From sequence record OR770614.1: DNA of 64,000 bases; one strand, 5' to 3'. A model generated the notes under the pieces. It ran no database searches, was not told where the DNA came from, and saw nothing but the letters and a program-made list of their open reading frames with translations. Below, piece after piece: positions 19,027 to 57,170 of the stretch. Every line of letters begins with the position of its first letter. The stretch's first letter is position 1. The translations under genes and the position numbers were made by a program.

Positions 19027-19129
19027 TGTTCCTAATGAGATTCGAACTCATAACCTACAGATCCATAAATTATCCTATCCAGGTATAATTCATAAAATCC
19101 GTACACTCTGACCATTGAGCTATAGGAAC
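19027..19129 (-). ncRNA. tRNA-like RNA with anticodon loop replaced by a long hairpin
   Basis: Acceptor GTTCCTA/TAGGAAC, D arm GCTC-AATGGTCA-GAGT, T arm ATGAG-TTCGAAT-CTCAT; 38 nt between TACGG and CTGTA instead of 7. Confidence 0.8.
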
Positions 19130-19494: not shown

Positions 19495-19561
19495 ATACTA
19501 TATAGTTAATTAATATTTTTAAATAAAATTTTTTAATAAATAGGAATTTTAGACCAAAAAA

Positions 19562-19631
19562 AGCTTATCCGAGGGATCGAACCCCGGACACATGATGAAA
19601 ATCATTGCTCTACCAACTGAGCTAGATAAAC
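19562..19631 (-). ncRNA. tRNA-like RNA with a 4-nt anticodon loop (Phe-like scaffold)
   Basis: GTTTATC/GATAAGC acceptor, GCTC-AGTTGGTA-GAGC D arm, CGGGG-TTCGATC-CCTCG T arm, anticodon arm ATGAT-TTTC-ATCAT; own early-type promoter 19644-19658. Confidence 0.75.
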
Positions 19632-19678
19632 TTTCTTCATTATTATAATATATGTTTATATTTCACTATATTACGCTT

Positions 19679-21055
19679 TTAATAAATATAATCTTCGATA
19701 TCAATTTCATTTTGTTTAATTGTCATATCATGGAAAGACTTCATGGAGCTTGTTACAATTGCTTGAGCTACCTGATTGACTAATAAACCAATATTTTCAA
19801 TACCTAATTTGTAAGGTAATTCTCCTGCACATTTACTACAAATATCTTCACTCGCACAATACATAGGACTTCTGAAGTTCAATACTTTCTCAATATACTC
19901 ATCTACATTTTCAGGAGTTAATAATATTAATTGACCTTTTCTTCCTGAAGTATTTTCAAAATATCTATAAAGTAAAAGACTTGCATTATCTTTAGTTAAA
20001 GTTAATTTTAATGTATGTTTTGTTCTACAATCAGAACCTTGTTTATCTAATACAGTTGTTTGGAAAGCGGACATAAGTTTTTTAGCTTGATCATTTTATT
20101 ATCTATATTTTACTATAGATTAGACTATATCTTATGAATTTAATCATTTCTATATTTAGTCGTTGGACAACTTTATTAAGTTGATGCTAGTTAGTTTTAA
20201 CATTCTAGCAATTAATAGAATTTATTGTGAGCATCTAATTTACCCACCTTCTTGAGTACCTAAAGCACGTCCAGCTGAACCAGCTGTCATAATATCACCA
20301 AACATATATAATTCTTCTGGATCAATTCCATCAGCTAAAGAACTCTTAGCAATACGTATTTTACTAGGATCAGCAAAATTTTTATTTGCTCCACGAATAA
20401 GAGCTGTTAATTTAAAGTTATTTTCAAAACTACCTCTTGATTTACTATCATAAATATCAAGATCTGCTAAACCTTCTAATTCTTCCTTACTTAACTTAAT
20501 TAATTCTTCTTCAATAGCACTAATAGCATTCAATTCTTCACCAGGAGTATTTAATGCTTTACCGTATTTCTCTAGTAATTCTTCTTTCTTTTGTTTAACT
20601 TTATCTGGAGCAACCATCATTGTAGTTGTTAAGCTAGAATTAATAAATCCTGCTATAGAGAAACCAAGCCATTGAAGTTTATCAATATACATATTCATAT
20701 CTTTAGTTGTAATAACGTCATTAAGTAATAAACTAGATAGTTCAGATTGTAGATTTCCTACACCTGATCCTCCCATATCTTTATTCATATATCCTATAAT
20801 AGGTCCTATTTTATTGTCTAATATAAATTTATTAAATATATATCTTCCAACTGTTGTTCTTTCATCTTTACTATTATAAACTAAATCTTTTTTAAGTTTA
20901 AATCTATCGCTAGGGTTAAACATTGGTTGTGTATTTTGTCTAAATGCAAATAATTCTTTAAGTTTATCAAGAGTAATATCTTCTTTTTTTATACTTAATA
21001 AAGTTGATATTTCTTTCTCAGATAAATCTTTTTTATCATAAGTCATATTAACCAA
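19679..21055 (-). CDS. rpoC: RNA polymerase beta' C-terminal subunit (probably virion RNAP), spliced; exons 21055-20242 and 20091-19679, 408 aa
   Basis: Splicing gives ALGTQEGGYQAKKLMSAF (bridge helix/switch); RSPMYC..ICSKC Zn site; SMKSFH trigger loop; late promoter 21089-21100. Confidence 0.88.
20092..20241 (-). mobile_element. Group I intron, 150 nt, no ORF
   Basis: P1 GTGGGT/GCTCAC with U-G splice pair; P AATTGCTAG, Q CTAGCATC, R TCCAACGACTA, S AAGATATAGTCT; terminal G. Confidence 0.9.
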
Positions 21056-24300: not shown

Positions 24301-25982
24301 CTAATAAAATTGGGGTAGTTAGACAGCTTTCATATAATTCACTAATTAAATCTACTAGAGGTTATACAGATGGTGGTAAAAAAGATGCTAATGACACATC
24401 TCTATATACTCCATTAGAACTACTTAACCCATATTCTAGTAGACATGCCGATGATCAAACATGGATAGTCGGCTTAAAAACTATTTAATTGCTGAAATTA
24501 CTTTAAAGTTAATCAGCATCAATCAAATTGTTCAACGACTAAATAATAGTTACTAATTATATAATTAGTAATGATATAGTCTCAACTATGTATAAAGTAT
24601 ATAGAAATAAGATAATGTCTCCACGTATTGGAATGACTGGTACTCAAGCCAAGCACGTAATTCCAACAAAAACTAATAGTAAACCATTAGTTGGATCTGG
24701 TGTTGATAAATCTTTAGCTTATCAATTATCAGATACATTTGCTTTTAAAGCTAAGCAAGATGGTAAAGTATTAAAAATTAATGAGAAAACTGGTTTAATG
24801 ACAGTGGAATATATCAATGGTGAAAAAGATATTGTTGATATATCTGAAAAATTAGCCAAAAACTCTAACTCAGGTTTTTATCAATCTAATAAACTTGATC
24901 CACAATTTAACGTAGACGACACTTTTAATAAAGGTCAAATACTTGCTAAAAATAATAATTTCTTTGCTGGATCTGGTAAAAATAATGATATTCAATTCAC
25001 TTCAGGTAAATTATCTAAAGTATCTGTAGCTAGCTCATATGGTATTATAAATGCCTTTCATTATAGTAATGTAATGTCAAAAAATTATTAATTGCTGAGA
25101 AATATTAAATTAATCAGCATCTCTATATTTATAGAGTTCAACGACTAAATATAATTATTCATTAATGCTAATGAATTTGATATAGTCTAATCTATTATAA
25201 AAATATAATAGCTAATATAAATGACTTATGAAGATAGTTCTATTATTTCTAGTAGTATGTCTGAAGCAATGTCTACTAAAGTTACTATGAAGAAAACAGT
25301 AAATATTCCATCAAACACAAATATTCAATATATAGTTAAAGAAGGTCAGAAAGTACGTACAGGAGATCCTTTAATGATATTTGAAACTTCATTCGATGAA
25401 GAAGGTATTGGTTCTTTATTAGATAAAATTGGTAGTGAATTTGAACAAGATATTCAAGATATAGCTAACCGAGCTGTTAGAAGTAAATATACAGGTAATA
25501 TTAAAAAGATTAATATTTATTATAATGATGATATTGAAAATATGACTGATAGTTTAGCTAAATTAGTTAATAATTACATTAAAAAATCAAATGATAAATA
25601 TAAAGAATATAAATCTGGAATTAAAAATAATAAAGAAACTTTACCTGGTATTGATGTAGATATCGCTGCAGTTGATAAAATTAATACAGAGAAAATTAAA
25701 GGGGAAAAAGTTGACGGAGTTCTTATTGAAATCTTCACTGAGTATGAAGATGATATGAGTGTTGGAGATAAAATTAGTTTCTATGGAGCTTGTAAAACTG
25801 TAGTTGCTGATGTAACTCCTCCAAATGAATCTCCTTATGCAGAATATAGACCTGATGAGGAAATCGAAGCTGTATTCTCTCCATTAAGTATTGTCTCTCG
25901 TATGACAGTTGATATTTACATGATGCTATTTACAAATAAAGCTTTAATAGAATTAAAACGTAAAGTAAAAGATATGATTTAA
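21372..25982 (+). CDS. rpoB: RNA polymerase beta subunit (probably virion RNAP, phiKZ gp178-like size), spliced; exons 21372-24452, 24618-25043, 25224-25982, 1421 aa
   Basis: KYLKLNGGK, SPDSNKIGVVRQL, spliced HADSPRIGM and SSYGTYED, GDKISFYGACKTVV, PLSIVSRM; late promoter 21324-21335. Confidence 0.88.
24453..24617 (+). mobile_element. Group I intron, 165 nt, no ORF
   Basis: P1 GCCGAT/GTCGGC; P AATTGCTGA, Q AATCAGCATC, R GTTCAACGACTA, S GATATAGTCT; terminal G at 24617. Confidence 0.9.
25044..25223 (+). mobile_element. Group I intron, 180 nt, no ORF
   Basis: P1 GGTAT/ATGCC; same P/Q/R/S core; ends AATATAAATG; splicing yields YG|TYED. Confidence 0.9.
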
Positions 25983-47909: not shown

Positions 47910-50396
47910 TTAAAAATCACTATCATCATCTGCATTGTTATCATCAGAACCAAATGAATCATCATCTGTATTACCATCAGAACCAAATGAATCATCATCA
48001 GATTTTTTTGATAACTCATCTTCTTTTTTATCTTTTTCTATATCTTTTTTAACATTCTCAATAATGTTTTCAAATCTATCATAAGATAAATTAGACATAA
48101 ATTCTTGTGTTACTAATTCTTTCCTAAATAATCTCTTAAGTTTATCATTTTCAGTCTCGTCTTCAGTTTCTGGAGTATATAAAGGAACTAAGAAATCTAA
48201 CATTTGTGTTACTGCACCAACTTCTTCATTTAAATTACCTAAATTTAAAAATACTGGTGGTGGGAAATATGCTTCTATTTCTGATACAGTTCCTAATAGT
48301 TCTTCATAATCTTTTTCATTATTAGTTTCTTTATTTTCTAAATAATATAAACGTCTTAATACTTTAGTAAAGAAATCTCCAAATGAATTTTGATAGTTAA
48401 CTACTTTTCTTACAAATCCATTATTTTGCATTGCTAATGATCTTGCATAATCAGTTTCAGCTTCAGAATCAATATAATTTAAAGGTACTCCTGTACCTGA
48501 AATAACGGATTTCTTAAGCCATTCTAAGAATTCATCATTAATATCAATTTGAATACCTGAAATGGTATCTATTTCTAAAGGTGTATTACCATCTTTATTC
48601 TCAGGAATGTACATGTTCTCTAAATTACCTACTTGGTTAAACATTGTTTGAACTGATGTTCCATCTCCAAACATACCAGAAGACATTTCACTAGATCTTA
48701 CATTACGGATAACTTCTTCTACAGTACCTTCATAATCATCATCTAATCCAGATTTAACTCTAAATACACGTCTATCTCTTGACTGATTTATTTTAACCAT
48801 CATTGTAGTAATTAATGTACTTAAATATAATTTAGCAAAGAATAATGATTTGTATAATCTTGAAACTCCATATGTCTTCTGACTATCAAGTTTATGATGT
48901 ACAACTTCTTCAGGTTCTAAGTACGTTAATTTAATACCATTTTCAATAATATAATTTTTACGTATTAAACGATATATAACATCTTTAAAAGAATCATTTT
49001 TATTTACAAAATCCATATCAATCTTTTTAGCTATACCTTTAACCATTACATCTACAAGACCTTGATAAGCCATTAATGTATTACCATTTTCAAAGTAAGA
49101 ACCTGAAGTAGCATTCATTCCAGCATTTGGATTTTTAGAATTAGTAGTTGTTCCTCCCGTAGCTGAATTACCTGTAACAGGATCTAAATTAGTTATTCCC
49201 ATTCCATTTGGCATAGAACCCATTTGGGATTGTTTTTGATATCCATCTCCCATAATACCGTTCATAGCACTTAATAAAGGATTTGCTCCTCCTCTAATAT
49301 CAGTACCAGAATCAGGTTCAATATAAAGATAACCAATACATAAACCATCAATTTCTAATTTAATCATATCTTCTGGATTAACATTTCGGAAATATGTAGT
49401 TCCACTTTTAATCTTTTTATCTCTGTTACTTCCTTGAGCTTTATCTAAGAAAGATTGAAGGTCATTTGAACCTTTATATTTACCAACATCAGAAAGCAAT
49501 TCAGAAGAATTTTTAAAGAACTCTACATTTTCATTAATACTCTTAAGAATCTCATTTTTAAAATTTTCTTTTTGTAATTTAACATTCTTTTCATCTTTAT
49601 ATATTGATCCTTCATCAATATGATTATTTAATTCCTTAAGTAAGATATCTAAATCTTCATTATTAATTTCTTCATCTAAAAATGATTCATTAATAACTTT
49701 AGCATCATCAACAGAAGAACTTTCTCTACCTAAAACATCATCGTTCTCAGTAAGTATTTCTTCAAAATCTTTTCTAGTATCTTTAATAATATAGAAGAGA
49801 TCACCTAACATTAATCCTTCTCTCACTGAAGGATATATTAATTTATTTAAATCATATTTATCTACAATACGATCTAATTCTCTTTTAACTTTTCTATTCT
49901 CTTCATTATTTTCATTAATGTCAGATTTATATCTATACATTAATGATAATTTACTAGTATCATCAGGAGCTATAATTGAAGTTGAGAATACATCTATACT
50001 AGAAGAAATTTCTGGTATAAATTTATCTATAATACGATAATCATCATATCTAGATATTCTAGCTACTTCAGTACTAAAATCTTGATCATCGATATTCTCT
50101 TTAATAAAATCATTAACAAAGTTTTGTCTCTCATCTTTAGATACAGTTTTATTCCTTCTACTGTTACTCATTTCTTTAGCAGTAACCTTAGCACCTAAAG
50201 ATAATAAATCTCCACCATTTTCATCTCTATGACTAGTTTTTCTTCTTATATTAGGCAATCTTTTATTAAAATCGTTAATACTATTTCCTAGTATTTTAGG
50301 ATTTTCTTCAGGATCTAAACTTTTAATAATATCTTTATCTAAATTATTAAAAGAATTATTTATTTTATTATTTTCATCAGCCAAATTCCATTTCAT
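47910..50396 (-). CDS. Portal protein (T4 gp20-like)
   Basis: 828 aa; SRDRRVFRV, ENMYIPEN..LEIDTISG, LKKSVISGTGVP pattern matches gp20-type portal core. Confidence 0.75.
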   Translation of the reverse strand: MKWNLADENNKINNSFNNLDKDIIKSLDPEENPKILGNSINDFNKRLPNIRRKTSHRDENGGDLLSLGAKVTAKEMSNSRRNKTVSKDERQNFVNDFIKENIDDQDFSTEVARISRYDDYRIIDKFIPEISSSIDVFSTSIIAPDDTSKLSLMYRYKSDINENNEENRKVKRELDRIVDKYDLNKLIYPSVREGLMLGDLFYIIKDTRKDFEEILTENDDVLGRESSSVDDAKVINESFLDEEINNEDLDILLKELNNHIDEGSIYKDEKNVKLQKENFKNEILKSINENVEFFKNSSELLSDVGKYKGSNDLQSFLDKAQGSNRDKKIKSGTTYFRNVNPEDMIKLEIDGLCIGYLYIEPDSGTDIRGGANPLLSAMNGIMGDGYQKQSQMGSMPNGMGITNLDPVTGNSATGGTTTNSKNPNAGMNATSGSYFENGNTLMAYQGLVDVMVKGIAKKIDMDFVNKNDSFKDVIYRLIRKNYIIENGIKLTYLEPEEVVHHKLDSQKTYGVSRLYKSLFFAKLYLSTLITTMMVKINQSRDRRVFRVKSGLDDDYEGTVEEVIRNVRSSEMSSGMFGDGTSVQTMFNQVGNLENMYIPENKDGNTPLEIDTISGIQIDINDEFLEWLKKSVISGTGVPLNYIDSEAETDYARSLAMQNNGFVRKVVNYQNSFGDFFTKVLRRLYYLENKETNNEKDYEELLGTVSEIEAYFPPPVFLNLGNLNEEVGAVTQMLDFLVPLYTPETEDETENDKLKRLFRKELVTQEFMSNLSYDRFENIIENVKKDIEKDKKEDELSKKSDDDSFGSDGNTDDDSFGSDDNNADDDSDF

Positions 50397-50421
50397 CTCC
50401 TTTTTAGAATTTTTCCTTACA

Positions 50422-51207
50422 TTATATATTATAAATCAAAAAATCTAAATTTGCTATAAATTTATCTTGAGAAATTGAAAATTTTAGTAAGATAAATTCA
50501 CTATATACATCTGTTTCCGGAGCAAAGATATCTACATGAACTTCAGGACAAACAATATTTCCTTTTGTCGTTTTATATTTTAATCCTAATAGATATTTCT
50601 TTGAAGTTCTGAAATCAATTAAATAATCATCTTCATCATAAATATAATACGGTTCTCTTACAAACATTTCATTTTCAGTAAATATACATTTAAAGAATTC
50701 AGAAGGTTTACATTCTTTAATATATAATAAAGATTTTTCATCTAAATTAAAAGAATAGAAAGGATCTGATTCTTTAAGAAATTTAATAGCATCCTCTGTA
50801 TAATTATATTCTTCATTGATATTCTCTTCAATATGATAATCTTTATCATCAATAATTGTTTCTAAATCAGATTCTCTAGTAAACTTAATACCTTTATTAT
50901 CTTCATCATTAAAGAATTCTACTTTAATAATTTTATCAGCTTTATTAGTTCTAACTTGTATAAAATCTTCTACATTAAAGCTACAATATTCAATTGGAAG
51001 AAGATAATCATAAATTGGATTATCTTCTTTAATTTGTACATTAACATTATTAGGTATAGTCTCTAAATTAGAACCATTAGTAAATACATTATTTTTGAAA
51101 TCTATCAATTTATTTCCATTTTCAATATTATTAAATAATTTAGAAATTTCTTCAAAAGTCATGACTAATTTATTTACTATTTTACTTTCTTCAATTAAAA
51201 TACTCAA
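50422..51207 (-). CDS. Hypothetical protein
   Basis: 261 aa, TTG start, coupled downstream of DNA polymerase. Confidence 0.6.
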   Translation of the reverse strand: MSILIEESKIVNKLVMTFEEISKLFNNIENGNKLIDFKNNVFTNGSNLETIPNNVNVQIKEDNPIYDYLLPIEYCSFNVEDFIQVRTNKADKIIKVEFFNDEDNKGIKFTRESDLETIIDDKDYHIEENINEEYNYTEDAIKFLKESDPFYSFNLDEKSLLYIKECKPSEFFKCIFTENEMFVREPYYIYDEDDYLIDFRTSKKYLLGLKYKTTKGNIVCPEVHVDIFAPETDVYSEFILLKFSISQDKFIANLDFLIYNI

Positions 51208-51210
51208 AGG

Positions 51211-53844
51211 TTAAGCTCCTTTACTTTTTATTTTATCAGATACTTTCTTAGCTGCAACATTCAATGGAGGTAAACCATGAAATTCTTGAGCAAATGCTAC
51301 ACTATCTTGACTGTTAAATTTACTAATAAATTCAGTATTAAAGTCGTAATTTAATTTGTCTTCTTCATACTTAGGAACTGTCATTGTAGATTTATCTTGT
51401 ATTTGAATTTTACCTATATGTCCTTCAGGTGTTATATTATATGCTCTAATAATAGATGGATATAGAGCAGTCAAGTCAAAGTCACAAACATTACTAAATA
51501 ATCTATTAGATCTAATATCTCTACCTTTAACTAAAATATCACCCATACGTTCTATTAATGTCATATTAGCTACAAATCCACCACGTATTTTATCTGCGTT
51601 TGGATCAGATAGTATTTTAGAGTGATTATTACTTAATACATATCCTTGATTTTCAAAGAAGACAGAACTACGATTTCTTAAACAAATAGTTTTCTTAAGT
51701 GCTTTACTTGGTCTCGTTCTAGTCATATCTACAATAGAGAATAATAAATCAAACATATTAGTGTTCTTTTCTATTAAAGCAGTTAATACTGTATCTTTAA
51801 TATTGTATAGAATAAATGTATAATAATCTCTAAAATGTAAATCAGAGATAGATCCTTCATATACATCCTTTTTAATACCAGTTTCTTTTTCACCAACATC
51901 ATTTAACTTAACTGATTCCATAACACCATTTGGTTTATTTACATTTGCATATAAAGCTAATTGGTCAATCCAGTTAGTGTATGAGTTAGTTTCGAATGTA
52001 GATGATCTATTAGCTGCATCTGTAGCATTTTTATCTAATCTATAATAAGCTTTTTTATCTTGTAAATCTTTAGAACAGAAATAATCAGCTGGATCTTCTC
52101 CATTAGCTCTGATTCTTTCAAATATAGCAGGAAAATCGTAATCAAGATTCCACTTTTATTTAAATAGACTGTATCTTATTTGTTATTTAAACAAATTTCC
52201 TTATTCAGTCGTTGAACGTATATTAATACGATGCTGATTAGTTTAAACACTTCCAGCAATTAAAGGAATTTTACACGACCTAGAATTTTGATTAAGCCGT
52301 ACATACATCAGGTTTACTAATTTCATTAATATAATATAAAAATGCTTTTATAATTTCCATTTCAGATTCTAATTCATATATTTCAAATTCTAATCCTAGA
52401 TTACCAATTTTACTATTTTCATTATTATAAATATTATTTAAATCTTCTAACAGTTTACTTTTATTTTCCATAGTTTCTTTATAAGTATCTGTATCATATT
52501 TTAAAGCAAATGTTAAACATTTACGTTTACTCCAGTCAACAGCAGTTATAATATTAACTTCAGCCTCTGCTTTTTCTGGTTCAGGGACATTTATATTAAC
52601 TTTATACAATTGTATAAAGATTAGACTATATCTTTTAAATTCAAATATATTTCCATTTAAAATTTTTGTAAGTTTTACTATTTCTATAACCATTTGCAAC
52701 TGCTTGTATTCCTTTTCTATCTATATTTAATTCTTCCGCTGCAAATTTAGCACTTTCATATTCTTTTATAATTTTATCTGTTTCTTTATCTATTTGTGCC
52801 ACTGGTTTTCTTCTCTTTTTTAATGATTCTTCCATTTTATCAGTTTTATGAAGATTATTTTCTATAGCATGTAAATTATTTTCTAATACTGACATCCATT
52901 CTAAATTAGATAAATTATTATTTAATTTATTACCGTCAATATGATTAACTACATTTTTATCAATATCTTTATTTTCGATAAAATTCTCTGCAACTAAACG
53001 GTGTATTCTTCTTGTATGCTTCTTATTATTTTTATATAATTGAACATCTTCATAACCATTTTTATTTATTCTTGTCTTTAATACTCTTTCTTTAATAAGC
53101 ATTCTTTTATCTTTACCTTTTAAAGAATCATTATATACATATCTTGAAACCGATTTAACTTTACCAGTATTGGATATTTTATAGTAATTTTCAAAATCTT
53201 TAATGTCTTTCCATATTTCTTTCATTATTTTCCTCCTTTTATAAAGGAAGTATATTTGAATTATATTATTATATTTAGTCGTTGAACACTAAATTAGTGA
53301 TGCTGATTATTTTTAAACTTTTCAGCAATTAATAATTTTTTAATTGAGCTACCTAAATTAACCCAACTGTTTGCGAAGAATCAACTTCTATATCAAAGAA
53401 AACTATATCAATTCCAACTTTACTATCTAAGTTTTGTTTGATATACTCATTAATATTATAATCTTCAATATTAATATCAGATCCATGAACATTATTCATT
53501 AAATGAAAATCTTTTAATTTTCTAAACTCTTCATAATTACCTGAAGATAATATTCTATCGTATTCTGATTTATCTTGAGCATTACCTGCTTCTCTAACTA
53601 TAGATTTAATAACATCTTTATGTTTACAGTGTACAGTTCTAACTTTTTCTTTAGCCATAGAACCTACAACTATATTAGGTGGTAACCAATGTTCATCTTT
53701 AGTTACATAATAATGCATCATAGGATCTACTATTTCCATATGTTTCTTAGTTCCATCTTCTTCTTTGACTACCATTACTACTTTTTCTTTTTTATTAGAT
53801 GTTTCTTTTTTATTCAAATATGTTGATTTTATAAAACGACCCAT
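51211..53844 (-). CDS. Family B DNA polymerase, N-terminal half (exonuclease plus motif A), spliced; exons 53844-53361, 52587-52295, 52152-51211, 572 aa
   Basis: Splicing restores FFDIEVDSSQTVG|FPEPE and CTA|WNLDYD; YNIKD ExoIII; DFDLTALYPSII motif A; no motif B/C. Confidence 0.9.
52153..52294 (-). mobile_element. Group I intron, 142 nt, no ORF
   Basis: P1 TACGGCT/GGTCGTG; P4 TGCTG/CAGCA; P7 GACTG/CAGTC (covariant with GACTA/TAGTC of the sister introns); terminal G at 52153. Confidence 0.9.
52588..53360 (-). mobile_element. Group I intron, 773 nt, with HNH endonuclease ORF in P8
   Basis: P1 TTGGGT/GCTCAA; P/Q/R before the ORF, S AAGATATAGTCT after it; ends AATATAAATG. Confidence 0.9.
52641..53225 (-). 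CDS. Intron-encoded NUMOD4-HNH-NUMOD1 homing endonuclease (I-HmuI-like)
   Basis: EIWKDIKDFENYYKISNTG, IHRLVAENF, VNHIDGNKLNN..NLEW, YESAKFAAEEL; SD AAGGAGG. Confidence 0.92.
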   Translation of the reverse strand: MKEIWKDIKDFENYYKISNTGKVKSVSRYVYNDSLKGKDKRMLIKERVLKTRINKNGYEDVQLYKNNKKHTRRIHRLVAENFIENKDIDKNVVNHIDGNKLNNNLSNLEWMSVLENNLHAIENNLHKTDKMEESLKKRRKPVAQIDKETDKIIKEYESAKFAAEELNIDRKGIQAVANGYRNSKTYKNFKWKYI

Positions 53845-53921
53845 AACTAAAAATTCCTCCTAATTCAAGTTATTTCATAATTGCTAGTTATTACAATTTT
53901 GTAAAAAATTAAAAATATAAT

Positions 53922-53950
53922 GCCAAACAACCTTATTAAAGTTGTTTGGC
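53922..53950 (-). terminator. Intrinsic terminator
   Basis: GCCAAACAAC/GTTGTTTGGC stem. Confidence 0.7.
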
Positions 53951-54009
53951 TTGTTTTATATTTATTTAGTCCAAATAAAAACTGTTTCTTTAGTAGTTTT
54001 TGATTCTTT

Positions 54010-54210
54010 TTAAATTTTCTCCTTTGATTTTAATTCTAAGTAATAATCATTTAACTTTTCACAAATATTTAAAGATAATCCACCTATTTCTCTTTTACCA
54101 TTCTTAAGTTTAGATATTTGTGATTGATCTACTTTTGTTTCTTTTGCAATTCTACTTCCATTTATATTACTTTTAAGTAATTTTTCTATATTATTTCTCA
54201 TCTCACTCAT
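54010..54210 (-). CDS. XRE-family HTH protein
   Basis: 66 aa; GSRIAKETKVDQSQISKLKNG. Confidence 0.8.
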   Translation of the reverse strand: MSEMRNNIEKLLKSNINGSRIAKETKVDQSQISKLKNGKREIGGLSLNICEKLNDYYLELKSKEKI

Positions 54211-54232
54211 ATATAAACTCCCATTCTATATT

Positions 54233-54394
54233 TTATAATAATTTATCTTCTTCATTATATACATATTTTTCTGTATCAACTGTGTCGATATCATCTTGCT
54301 GATATCTAGTTCTTAAATGTTCAAAGAATAAGTTAAGTGGTAAAGCAATTGCAATAGTCATTAAAGTAGATATTAGTAGTCTTTTTTTATTCAT
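54233..54394 (-). CDS. Small membrane protein, 53 aa (not in ORF track)
   Basis: MNKKRLLISTLMTIAIALPLNLFF...; SD AAAGGA upstream. Confidence 0.55.
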   Translation of the reverse strand: MNKKRLLISTLMTIAIALPLNLFFEHLRTRYQQDDIDTVDTEKYVYNEEDKLL

Positions 54395-54434
54395 TTTAAA
54401 ACATCCTTTTCAAATTTATTTAAATAAGTCTTGT

Positions 54435-57170
54435 TTAATTTAATTTAAATAACACATTCTTACCTTGCATTATTTCTTCATCATTAATATCAATCTTACT
54501 TTCATATCCTTTAAGTAAAATTAAATCAATATCAGAACTATAAAATTCATCATTATGACTAATTAAGAATACTTGTTCTAATCCCATTAATTCAATTTGT
54601 TTATCTATAACATCAACAAATCTTCTACGATTATTAGAGTCTAATGTTGCGTCCATCTCATCTAGGTAAAGAATATTATAATCTTGTGATACTTTATTTA
54701 ATAATGATAATGATAAACTAATATTAGTTAAAGCTGTTTCACCTTGAGAAGCTTCTTTAATGTCTTGTAATTCAGTTCCATTACCTTTATAAACATTAAT
54801 AAAGAAATCCTTGTCAGTTAAATCAAAATCAATCTTGAATGAATTATTATAAGCTACTGAAAGAAGTTCATTAGTACTTACTGCAATATCTTTAAGGTAA
54901 TTAGTAATGAATATTAATGGTATAGAATCTTTTTTAGGGTTTAATGAATCGACTACTAATGAATATTTCCATAAAACTTTCTCAATATCATCAATCTTAT
55001 TAATAATCGTATTTACTGTAAAGTATTTTTCTTTAGTAGATTCTAATTCATTTTTCTTCATAGTTAAATTATCTTTAATAGAATTAATCTTATTATCTGA
55101 TTGTTGATTAAGTTCATATAATCTACTTAATTTATTTAAATCTTTATCAACTTCATCAATCTTATATTGTTTATCTTTAATGTTAGATTTAATTTCATCA
55201 GACTTCTCTGTTAAATTAATAAATTCATTAATAATGTCTAAAGTATTTTGTCCTTTATCTTTCTTTGCATTAAGTTCATTAAGATTCTCTAAGATATTAT
55301 CTTTATTACTTTTAACTTCTTCAATCTGCTTTTCTAATTCAGCTTTATCTTCATTATATTGATTCATTAATTTTTGATTAGAATGATCTTCTTTAAACGC
55401 ATATCTTTTTCTTTCTAATTCTTTAGATAATTCATCTCTATTGCGTTCAGATGTTCTAATTTCATTAACATTATCTGATAATGATTTCAAGCTATTTTCT
55501 TCATTAGTAAATGAGCTATTATTAATAAATATTTCTTTAATATTATCCATAGTAATAATATCAAAACCTAAATATTCGTTTAATGAATCGACATCTTCTT
55601 TAATATAATTAAATTGATTTAATATATCGATATGATTAGAAAGAAGTTCATTATCATTTTCTAACTGATTATTTTCTTCATAAAGTTCATTAACTCTAGT
55701 TTCCAATTTATCAATTGAATCATATTCATTATCTTTAAAATCAACTACTAAAGGTACAAACACACATTCTTTATAATGTTCATGATCTTTTTGTTCTAAT
55801 ATTTTAAGTAAATCTGATTTACCTTTAATTTGATTAAGACTTGTATTAAGTTCATTAGCTTCATTTAGGTTCATAGAAATTTTTTCTTTATTAGATTTAA
55901 TTTCAGTTTCAAAATCTCCATGAATATCATTATATTTAAATTTATTATCATTAACTAGACTCTTGAATTTATTAACTTTATTTAATAGATTATCTATATA
56001 TAAATTAAGCGTATTAACTTCAATGTCGTCTTTAATTTTAATATTAAAGTTATTGAAATAAGATCCTCTAGCAGCATCTATATCATTATCCAAATCAGTT
56101 AGATCATCTTTATATGATTGAAGAATTTCATCAATTTCCTGTGAAGCGTCATAATCTTCATTGAACTTAATAGCATTCATTCTAGATTCAATTTTAGATT
56201 TTCTACTAATTAAATCATCTAATTTATCTTGATTAGATTCTTTATCTTTTTTAGTTGATGTTAAATTTGTATGAACTTCATTAAGTATAGAAGATACTTT
56301 TTCTTTCTTTTCATTAGCAGATTCTAATGTATAATTATTTAAATTTTCATTAGATTCTTTTAACTTTCTTTCTTTTTCTAATTCAATTTCAAGTTCATGA
56401 AGTTCATTACTTAAATTTTCTTTTAATTGAGTTGGATGAATTTCATTATACTTTTCTTCCATAATAGAATTTAATTTAGTTTCATTAGAAGTCTTTTCTT
56501 TATTAGCATTATCTAATTCATCCTGAATTTCATTAATTAGATTTTCTAGTACTTCTTTTTCTTTCTTAATTTCATCAAATTCTTTATATTTATCTAAATC
56601 AAATCTTAATGATTTAAGATCTTTATCAATAAGTCTTTTCTTTTCATTAGCTACTTTATAAGCTTCTAAATATTTATCAATATTAGGTACAAATTTATTA
56701 ATATATGTCTTACGATCACCAGTAGTATAATCAATAAAGTTAGAAACATTATCTCCTAATCTACCTACAGTGAAATATTCTTGAGATACGTCTAATTCTT
56801 TATCAACTATTTCATTAAATAACTTAATACCACCATTCTCATTTAGCTCTTCACCATTCTTTTTAATAAATGATTTATTTTGAGAACTGTTTTTTCCATA
56901 ATGATGTTTAATCTCATATATGTCACTATTTTTAATATAATCGATTTCTTTAATTCCTTTTTCATCTTCAATAATATGATTTTTTCTTACATCATTAGAA
57001 CCTCTGTATGGACTTAATTGAGATATAATCGCTGATTTTCCAGATCCATTATCTCCAAGAAGCATTATCATATTATTTTTACTTTTACTGAAGTCTATTT
57101 CAATTTCTTTTAATCCTGTTCCAGCATATATACCTATAAAATTCTTTAACTTTAATCTTTTAATTTTCAT
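54435..57170 (-). CDS. sbcC: SbcC/Rad50-like SMC ATPase
   Basis: GDNGSGKS Walker A, long coiled coil, ASQGE signature, LYLDEMD Walker B, LISH. Confidence 0.88.
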   Translation of the reverse strand: MKIKRLKLKNFIGIYAGTGLKEIEIDFSKSKNNMIMLLGDNGSGKSAIISQLSPYRGSNDVRKNHIIEDEKGIKEIDYIKNSDIYEIKHHYGKNSSQNKSFIKKNGEELNENGGIKLFNEIVDKELDVSQEYFTVGRLGDNVSNFIDYTTGDRKTYINKFVPNIDKYLEAYKVANEKKRLIDKDLKSLRFDLDKYKEFDEIKKEKEVLENLINEIQDELDNANKEKTSNETKLNSIMEEKYNEIHPTQLKENLSNELHELEIELEKERKLKESNENLNNYTLESANEKKEKVSSILNEVHTNLTSTKKDKESNQDKLDDLISRKSKIESRMNAIKFNEDYDASQEIDEILQSYKDDLTDLDNDIDAARGSYFNNFNIKIKDDIEVNTLNLYIDNLLNKVNKFKSLVNDNKFKYNDIHGDFETEIKSNKEKISMNLNEANELNTSLNQIKGKSDLLKILEQKDHEHYKECVFVPLVVDFKDNEYDSIDKLETRVNELYEENNQLENDNELLSNHIDILNQFNYIKEDVDSLNEYLGFDIITMDNIKEIFINNSSFTNEENSLKSLSDNVNEIRTSERNRDELSKELERKRYAFKEDHSNQKLMNQYNEDKAELEKQIEEVKSNKDNILENLNELNAKKDKGQNTLDIINEFINLTEKSDEIKSNIKDKQYKIDEVDKDLNKLSRLYELNQQSDNKINSIKDNLTMKKNELESTKEKYFTVNTIINKIDDIEKVLWKYSLVVDSLNPKKDSIPLIFITNYLKDIAVSTNELLSVAYNNSFKIDFDLTDKDFFINVYKGNGTELQDIKEASQGETALTNISLSLSLLNKVSQDYNILYLDEMDATLDSNNRRRFVDVIDKQIELMGLEQVFLISHNDEFYSSDIDLILLKGYESKIDINDEEIMQGKNVLFKLN

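Follow-up and report, generated by a model that had tools for sequence, protein, structure and literature searches.

A putative group I intron of 142 nucleotides with a nearly bare catalytic core in a DNA polymerase gene of Staphylococcus jumbo phage PB50

The interrupted polymerase gene and its 142-nt intron

The 64,000-nucleotide (nt) stretch of DNA analyzed here (the window) is 100% identical to part of the genome of the Staphylococcus jumbo phage vB_StaM_PB50 (OR770614.1), window positions 1-64000 corresponding to positions 186001-250000 of the record. The identity of PB50 to other phages is ~96% for Machias and AH12, and ~80% for MarsHill, Madawaska, S6, PALS_2, LY01, UFV_DC4 (DC4), and SA1. 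On the minus strand of the window lies a gene for the exonuclease-domain subunit of DNA polymerase, whose three exons are separated by insertions of 773 and 142 nt (Table 1). The 142-nt insertion, a likely group I intron, is our subject. The homologous gene is given as a three-exon join in the Machias record and is uninterrupted in MarsHill (gp138, 573 amino acids (aa)), and the PB50 record splits it into three "DNA polymerase exonuclease domain protein" coding sequences (CDSs) and an HNH endonuclease. Throughout the PB50 record, the exons of at least 10 intron-split genes are entered as separate proteins, with no intron or joined CDS feature.

Joining the three exons of the polymerase gene gives a protein that aligns with MarsHill gp138 without gaps over both junctions. 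The motif SKPD(V/I)CTAWNLDYDFPAIFERIR is kept across the exon 2/exon 3 junction in PB50 and MarsHill, and the spliced reading, ...CTA|WNLDYD... (RNA junction GCU|UGG), is collinear with the intact MarsHill protein. By homology, the reading frame is restored against the intron-less AH12 allele as well. The open reading frame (ORF) of exon 2 ends at a UAA formed by the first three intron nucleotides, and the first 77 codons of exon 3, including the Exo II motif, lack a start codon of their own and are in frame and nearly identical to MarsHill. Splicing would be obligatory because of this in-frame stop, the frame shift, and the 77 start-less codons downstream, and precise exon ligation would restore the frame of the host gene. 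A first-pass annotation made from the letters of the window had proposed an intron of exactly this position and length, with obligatory splicing that restores TAWNLDYD, and both proposals agree with the alignments. Its boundary coordinates are favored because a 3'-terminal G is required.

The core helices P3-P8 occur in canonical order with a P3/P7 pseudoknot, in an RNA of 26% G+C. P4 (UGCUGG/UCAGCA, nt 37-42 / 58-63) carries a P5 of 3 base pairs (bp; AGU/ACU, nt 44-46 / 53-55) with a 6-nt loop, and J4/5 and J5/4 are A-rich. P2 is absent because only 6 nt lie between the guide and P3, and P7.1/7.2 because only 3 nt (AAU) lie between the P7 5' strand and the P3 3' strand. Reading of the intron sequence revealed no P2, P5abc, P7.1/7.2, or P9.x, and no GNRA loops or tetraloop-receptor candidates. 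The minimum free energy (MFE) fold of the precursor, calculated with nearest-neighbor parameters and 12-nt exon flanks, contains P1, P3, P4, P5, P6, and P8 with just the pairs given here; a pseudoknotted helix such as P7 lies beyond a fold of this kind. The guide, P3-P8, J6/7, J8/7, and terminal G named in the first-pass annotation were all recovered in place, and the missing peripheral elements were correctly listed there, given the two short gaps and a tail without a stable hairpin. Its P9 (TATTT/AAATA) does not survive: at most 3 A-U pairs could form, at a predicted +2.5 kcal/mol, so P9 is effectively absent. The 6-bp P10, the UAA at nt 1-3, and the precursor fold are additions to that list.

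Table 1 Features of the host gene, the 142-nt intron, and related introns. Positions refer to the window unless PB50 is named; nt are counted from the intron start.
Feature	Position	Strand	Remarks
Host gene, DNA polymerase exonuclease-domain subunit	51211..53844	-	572 aa after splicing
Exons 1, 2, 3	53844-53361, 52587-52295, 52152-51211	-	
142-nt group I intron (putative)	52153..52294	-	RNA reads 52294->52153; placed by junction vs MarsHill gp138 and covariance model R2
In-frame UAA stop, nt 1-3	52292..52294	-	exon 2 ORF ends here
P1 5' exon strand ACGGCU	52295..52300	-	U at -1 forms U•G wobble at splice site
Internal guide sequence GGUCGU, P1 3' strand, nt 15-20	52275..52280	-	P1 of 6 bp
P10 guide AUUCUA, nt 9-14	52281..52286	-	6 bp including one G•U, read from sequence
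P10 3' exon strand UGGAAU	52147..52152	-	Trp-Asn of Exo II motif; sequence and MarsHill alignment
P3 5' strand UUCCUU, nt 27-32	52263..52268	-	5/6 P3 pairs covary in family
P3 3' strand AAGGAA, nt 93-98	52197..52202	-	covariation and fold
P4-P5 hairpin	52232..52258	-	in MFE folds of intron alone and of precursor
P6 hairpin CGUAU-UAAU-AUACG, nt 65-78 (65-69 with 74-78)	52217..52230	-	4/5 P6 pairs covary
J6/7 UUCAAC, nt 79-84	52211..52216	-	nearly invariant in family alignment
P7 5' strand GACUG, nt 85-89	52206..52210	-	pseudoknot partner of 52167-52171
P7 3' strand CAGUC, nt 124-128	52167..52171	-	family covariation
P8 hairpin AUUUGUU-UAAAU-AACAAAU, nt 99-117 (99-105 with 111-117)	52178..52196	-	6/7 pairs covary
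J8/7 AAGAUA, nt 118-123	52172..52177	-	conserved block
3' tail UAUUUAAAUAAAAG, 14 nt	52153..52166	-	A-rich; terminal G at 52153; no stable P9
Sister intron A, 150 nt, virion RNA polymerase beta' gene	20092..20241	-	junction confirmed
Sister intron B, 165 nt, virion RNA polymerase beta gene	24453..24617	+	junction confirmed
Sister intron C, beta gene of intron B	25044..25223	+	180 nt (protein homology) or 159 nt from 25065 (P1 rule)
Sister intron D, 773 nt, same gene as 142-nt intron	52588..53360	-	HNH endonuclease ORF 53225-52641 in P8 loop
Second 142-nt member, near 3' end of virion RNA polymerase beta' gene	PB50 254521-254662 (L125:5521-5662)	-	P1 GAGAGU/GCUCUC
149-nt member inside catalytic NADFDGD motif (GADFDG|D)	PB50 254789-254937 (L125:5789-5937)	-	P8 almost absent

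The intron family in PB50 and in metagenomes

Conserved blocks of the intron led to four further introns in the window, and a hidden Markov model followed by a covariance model (R1) extended the search to the whole PB50 genome, in which the family has 22 copies. Their host genes encode virion and non-virion RNA polymerase subunits, both DNA polymerase subunits, gyrase B, the large terminase, and the ribonucleotide reductase alpha subunit. For an unbiased score, a second covariance model (R2) was rebuilt from 16 members outside the window. This search, a version of which the first-pass annotation had suggested as a check, scored the 142-nt intron at 99.7 bits (E = 6.8e-17), and the P-Q-R sequence pattern matched the window four times against zero expected. 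The 142-nt element thus belongs to a compact PB50 intron family, as proposed at first reading for a group of very small introns.

In the alignment of the 22 copies, which was fitted to a model that leaves out P7, 96.6% of cells were paired and both partners varied in 18 of the 29 pairs; when the partners were slid by 1-3 columns, pairing fell to 28-55%. P4 was paired in 100% of the copies, and P7 in 97% although it is not in the model. The last P7 pair is A-U in 19 copies and G-C in one, the intron of the polymerase gene, which bears out an earlier claim of a compensatory change in P7 relative to its sisters. In the candidate joining regions and P7, the family shows almost no variation in the blocks UAAU, UUCAAC-GACUR, and AAGAUA-YAGUC, which would match the classical group I consensus. 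Architecture varies among the members: some have a P2 hairpin, and others lack P8 (e.g., L123:29289-29435). A second 142-nt copy exists, and the intron of the polymerase gene is therefore tied for the shortest in the PB50 genome.

Group I identity and obligatory splicing are supported by the sequence, the intron-less alleles, the independent covariance model, and covariation. Given these lines of evidence, we conclude, with a probability of roughly 0.88, that the element is a genuine group I intron with a nearly bare catalytic core, and that its removal is needed to make the exonuclease-domain subunit. Several observations weigh against this conclusion. In the GenBank record, each of the three exons is entered as a protein of its own. 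The Rfam group I model (RF00028) has no match in the window at its gathering threshold, which the 142-nt intron does not reach, nor in positions 50000-55000 at E<=10. The helices are short and A-U rich, at -2.4 to -4.3 kcal/mol each at 37 °C, and the intron has neither GNRA loops nor the peripheral contacts that stabilize the Azoarcus, Twort, and T4 introns.

The Rfam result extends to all five introns of the window, to similar metagenomic introns, and to both Machias introns of the homologous gene, none of which was detected; in the same run, ordinary phage introns of 180-265 nt were. The miss is a limit of the model, not a feature that defines the class, and the 142-nt intron is an unannotated member of a reduced group I variant that is invisible to Rfam. 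Rfam likewise found no introns in the DC4 genome according to the paper describing that phage (PMC10638138), and in the MarsHill/Machias preprint, protein alignments were the sole basis for predicting introns, whose class is nowhere named.

The three exonuclease-domain CDSs of the PB50 record could also be taken at face value, the insertion being a dead relic that no longer splices and the polymerase being made as separate polypeptides, or the gene being non-functional. This is very unlikely, since the start-less opening of exon 3 has stayed in frame and near-identical to MarsHill with its Exo II motif, none of the core helices or joining regions is damaged, P7 carries a compensatory G-C change, and both P1 and P10 fit the exons exactly. 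Another way to cross the gap would be translational bypassing or other recoding, for which T4 gene 60 is the precedent, and a stop codon does stand at the take-off position. However, 142 nt is far above known bypass lengths, the gap holds a full group I core with covariation, and larger members of the family carry homing endonucleases, all of which make recoding more improbable still, to the point of being negligible. Splicing of the 142-nt intron in vivo is very likely, because all of its core elements are intact, the exons are matched exactly by P1 and P10, 77 conserved codons lack a start, and 22 copies of the family sit in essential genes of a lytic phage.

For four other members (introns A and B, the 149-nt copy, and the second 142-nt copy), tblastn matched intron-less homologues in one piece and so confirmed the junctions; for the last, such matches were found in S6, PALS_2, DC4, and SA1. 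In the 149-nt member, the last exon base is a C that faces a guide A, not the usual U•G. The length of intron C is in conflict: the P1 rule of the family (CAUUAU/GUAAUG, guide 6 nt before P3) gives 159 nt, and the intron-less DC4 homologue, which lacks the seven residues IINAFHY, gives 180 nt. The count of five cores in the window made in the first-pass annotation stands, as do its sizes of 142, 150, and 165 nt; the fourth is 159 nt or the 180 nt given there, which the DC4 homologue favors, and the fifth is the 773-nt intron that carries an HNH ORF. PB50 also has paired family introns separated by very short exons of roughly 40-60 nt, in its genes for the large terminase and the virion RNA polymerase beta subunit (L121:35559-35899 and L123:29077-29435).

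Two further RNA-like elements lie on the minus strand of the window. At 19027-19129, a tRNA-like gene scores 52.5 bits with the Rfam tRNA model and has ~30 extra nt in the place of the anticodon loop. It folds as a cloverleaf with a continuous "anticodon" arm of ~22 bp (z = -3.4), has no ARAGORN call, and has no feature listed there in the PB50 region inspected. At 19561-19632, ARAGORN reported a "tRNA-???" with a 2-base anticodon, in which the stem ATGAT/ATCAT closes a 4-nt loop.

Beyond PB50, BLAST of the 142-nt intron against phage records gave no copy of >80% identity, and a family-specific exact pattern had zero matches in IMG/VR. The P-Q-R blocks, searched as a pattern one N shorter than AATCNNGCA, were found in at least 115 IMG/VR stretches, with a median P4-to-P7 span of 153 nt versus 95-98 nt in the PB50 family; these are ordinary phage introns, of the kind that Rfam detects at 180-265 nt. 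With R2, 100 metagenomic loci yielded 154 matches of 110-180 nt, among them tandem ones whose intervening exons are very short and others that lack P8, whereas only four matches came from 185,579 bacterial and archaeal genomes. Clusters of 141-175-nt matches occur in several large uncultured phage contigs. Several R2 matches are in human-gut contigs of 370-400 kb, a length within the range of the gut "Jug" jumbo phages (described below).

Among the metagenomic and IMG/VR contigs, arrays of at least five tandem model matches of 140-175 nt, with gaps of 15-45 nt, were observed (L130:3912-4875, L014:405-1781, and L154:2746-6040), and some matches lack P8 (e.g., L154:2746-2885 and L104:1511-1651). 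Such tandem mini-intron arrays may account for the unexplained "gene fragmentation" of some crAss-like phages (PMC7886860). The best scores outside PB50 (up to 111 bits) are from a metagenomic contig with three tandem matches (L220:464-1070), one of them at the site of sister intron C; the contig is probably from an unsampled Staphylococcus-type jumbo phage. The first-pass annotation had counted the commonness of equally short complete introns in databases as grounds against its proposal, and in part such grounds exist, with a second 142-nt copy in PB50 and many metagenomic matches of 110-180 nt.

Occupancy of the intron site in related phages

The site of the 142-nt intron is empty in AH12 and MarsHill and holds an intron of 1087 nt (L002:6400-7486) in Machias. 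This Machias intron shares with that of PB50 the insertion point, the guide GGUCGUG, and the P4 and P7 blocks, but has a 762-nt endonuclease ORF between the P4 3' strand and P7, and its P5 and P8 regions are extended. The 142-nt intron was considered as a simple deletion derivative of the Machias intron, and this was rejected, as the similarity is limited to the guide, which is dictated by the exon, and to universally conserved core blocks.

The exons of Machias and AH12 are identical over ±60 nt save two synonymous positions right at the site. The exon end reads ACGGCU in the intron-bearing PB50 and Machias, ACCGCA in AH12, and ACGGCA in MarsHill; all of the differences are synonymous, and the two positions match the guide in the intron-bearing alleles only. 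The flanks of PB50 are identical to those of Machias at 54/60 and 50/60 positions, a divergence expected if another donor had contributed a longer co-conversion tract.

Variation is seen in the gene's first intron as well: intron D is 773 nt with an HNH ORF in its P8 loop in PB50 and Machias, versus an ORF-less 154 nt in AH12 (L253 ~1066-1219). These alleles show that an endonuclease was gained or lost within phages of ~96% identity. The 142-nt intron has no endonuclease gene of its own, and cannot home by itself. Because its site is empty in close relatives and holds a larger endonuclease-bearing intron in another, it is most likely a recently acquired, now passive mobile element.

Splicing mechanism, catalytic autonomy, and known introns

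In the splicing pathway expected from group I chemistry, the 5' exon sequence ACGGCU would pair with the guide GGUCGU to form P1, the U•G pair marking the cleavage site. A free guanosine held in P7 would attack the 5' splice site, after which the terminal G would occupy the same P7 pocket, with the adjacent guide AUUCUA holding the 3' exon sequence UGGAAU (P10). Exon ligation would then produce ...CTA|WNLDYD..., and the UAA at nt 1-3 would halt ribosomes ahead of the ribozyme.

The odds that the 142-nt intron splices without help are about even. A core that is inactive alone and depends on a trans-acting helper, such as a host or phage RNA chaperone, a binding protein, or ribosomes on the upstream exon, is a serious alternative, to which we assign somewhat less than an even chance. 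It would explain an intron in which P2, P7.1/7.2, a stable P9, and tetraloop-receptor candidates are missing and all helices are weak, and in which the guide is predicted to mispair with J6/7-P7 once the exons are removed. These phages grow at 30 °C and not at 37 °C. Many reduced organellar group I introns need proteins, and splicing of T4 td in vivo is helped by translation and chaperones. On the other hand, engineered sunY derivatives of ~180 nt stay active, those phage group I introns that have been studied are known to self-splice in vitro, and robust splicing is suggested by the presence of 22 copies in essential genes. Near the intron, no gene resembling a maturase or CYT-18 was noticed; phage-encoded splicing cofactors were not searched for systematically.

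Self-splicing of the 142-nt RNA in vitro is a tentative proposal, held at slightly under even odds. If it is right, this RNA and its 142-165-nt relatives would be the smallest group I ribozymes in nature that self-splice and keep the whole P3-P8 core. As a weaker corollary, the marginal stability of the ~20 introns in essential genes may be one reason why certain of these phages fail to grow at 37 °C.

Among known introns, the phage IA2 introns (T4 td, nrdB, and nrdD/sunY; Twort; SPO1) have the core blocks AAUUGC..., AAUCNGCA, GUUCAACGACUA, and AAGAUAUAGUC in common with the PB50 intron. They are likewise sited in conserved motifs of DNA or nucleotide metabolism genes, begin with an early in-frame stop, and, as in the PB50 family, have relatives with homing endonuclease ORFs in loops. 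In contrast to them, the 142-nt intron has no IA-defining P7.1/7.2, no P2, and no P9 or P9.x, and so lacks the P7.1/P7.2, P2, and P9 extension by which IA2 is recognized.

The Azoarcus pre-tRNA-Ile intron (IC3) is similar to the 142-nt intron in being ORF-less and in having a complete P3-P8 core without P5abc and most of the periphery. It is thermostable and rich in G-C, and has retained P2 and P9 along with their tetraloop-receptor contacts; the P2 and P9 hairpins of IC3, whose tetraloops dock into P8 and P5, are not present in the 142-nt intron. At 205 nt, the Azoarcus intron was still the compact model in 2026 (PMC13168695). The PB50 intron is 63 nt shorter, and differs from it also in its 26% G+C and in having neither P2 nor a stable P9.

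The Bacillus jumbo phage AR9/PBS1 is from a related group of phages, and much the same kinds of genes are interrupted in it. Its introns are said to have been described as self-splicing by Lavysh and colleagues in 2016. The two gyrA introns of AR9 are ordinary, ~350 nt long and G-C richer than the PB50 intron, and R1 had no match in the first 50 kb of AR9, the stretch searched, which includes both of them.

Our literature search for an architecture of 150 nt or less returned no description of one, and turned up papers on Azoarcus and on fungal elements. The latter are putative group I elements of 56-81 nt in rRNA genes, claimed to be minimal, with P1, P7, and P10 (Harris & Rogers, PMC3160393), which in vitro needed ~300 nt of exon/internal transcribed spacer context (PMC3160393). 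They lack P3-P6 and P8, whereas the PB50 intron keeps the whole canonical core.

In the gut "Jug" jumbo phages, a total of 2513 group I introns averaging ~206 nt were reported from 136 genomes, at an average of 18.5 per genome, ORF-less and in essential genes (Sci Adv 2026, PMC12880540). Metatranscriptome reads back splicing in 37 of the 76 tested. They were found with subgroup covariance models, and the authors likened them to GIR1-like ribozymes without describing their structure. Like PB50, these phages have many short ORF-less group I introns in essential genes, but they are of another lineage and host, and their introns are ~206 nt long. Dense short group I introns in jumbo phages are therefore already published; as far as searched, the architecture of at most 150 nt and its catalytic autonomy apparently are not.

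If the 142-nt intron does self-splice, it would be about 30% shorter than that of Azoarcus, a far smaller natural group I ribozyme than the compact model and useful for questions of structure, folding, and peripheral contacts. Together with it, the variants that also lack P8 or P9 would jointly define the natural minimum of this ribozyme class. Short introns are favored in permuted-intron RNA circularization, where the 142-nt intron could serve. The three states of its site (empty, 142 nt, and 1087 nt with an endonuclease) in phages of ~96% identity offer a clean setting in which to study how introns are gained, lose their endonucleases, and shrink. As Rfam does not see the family, a model dedicated to it would repair gene calls here and in many metagenomic jumbo phages.

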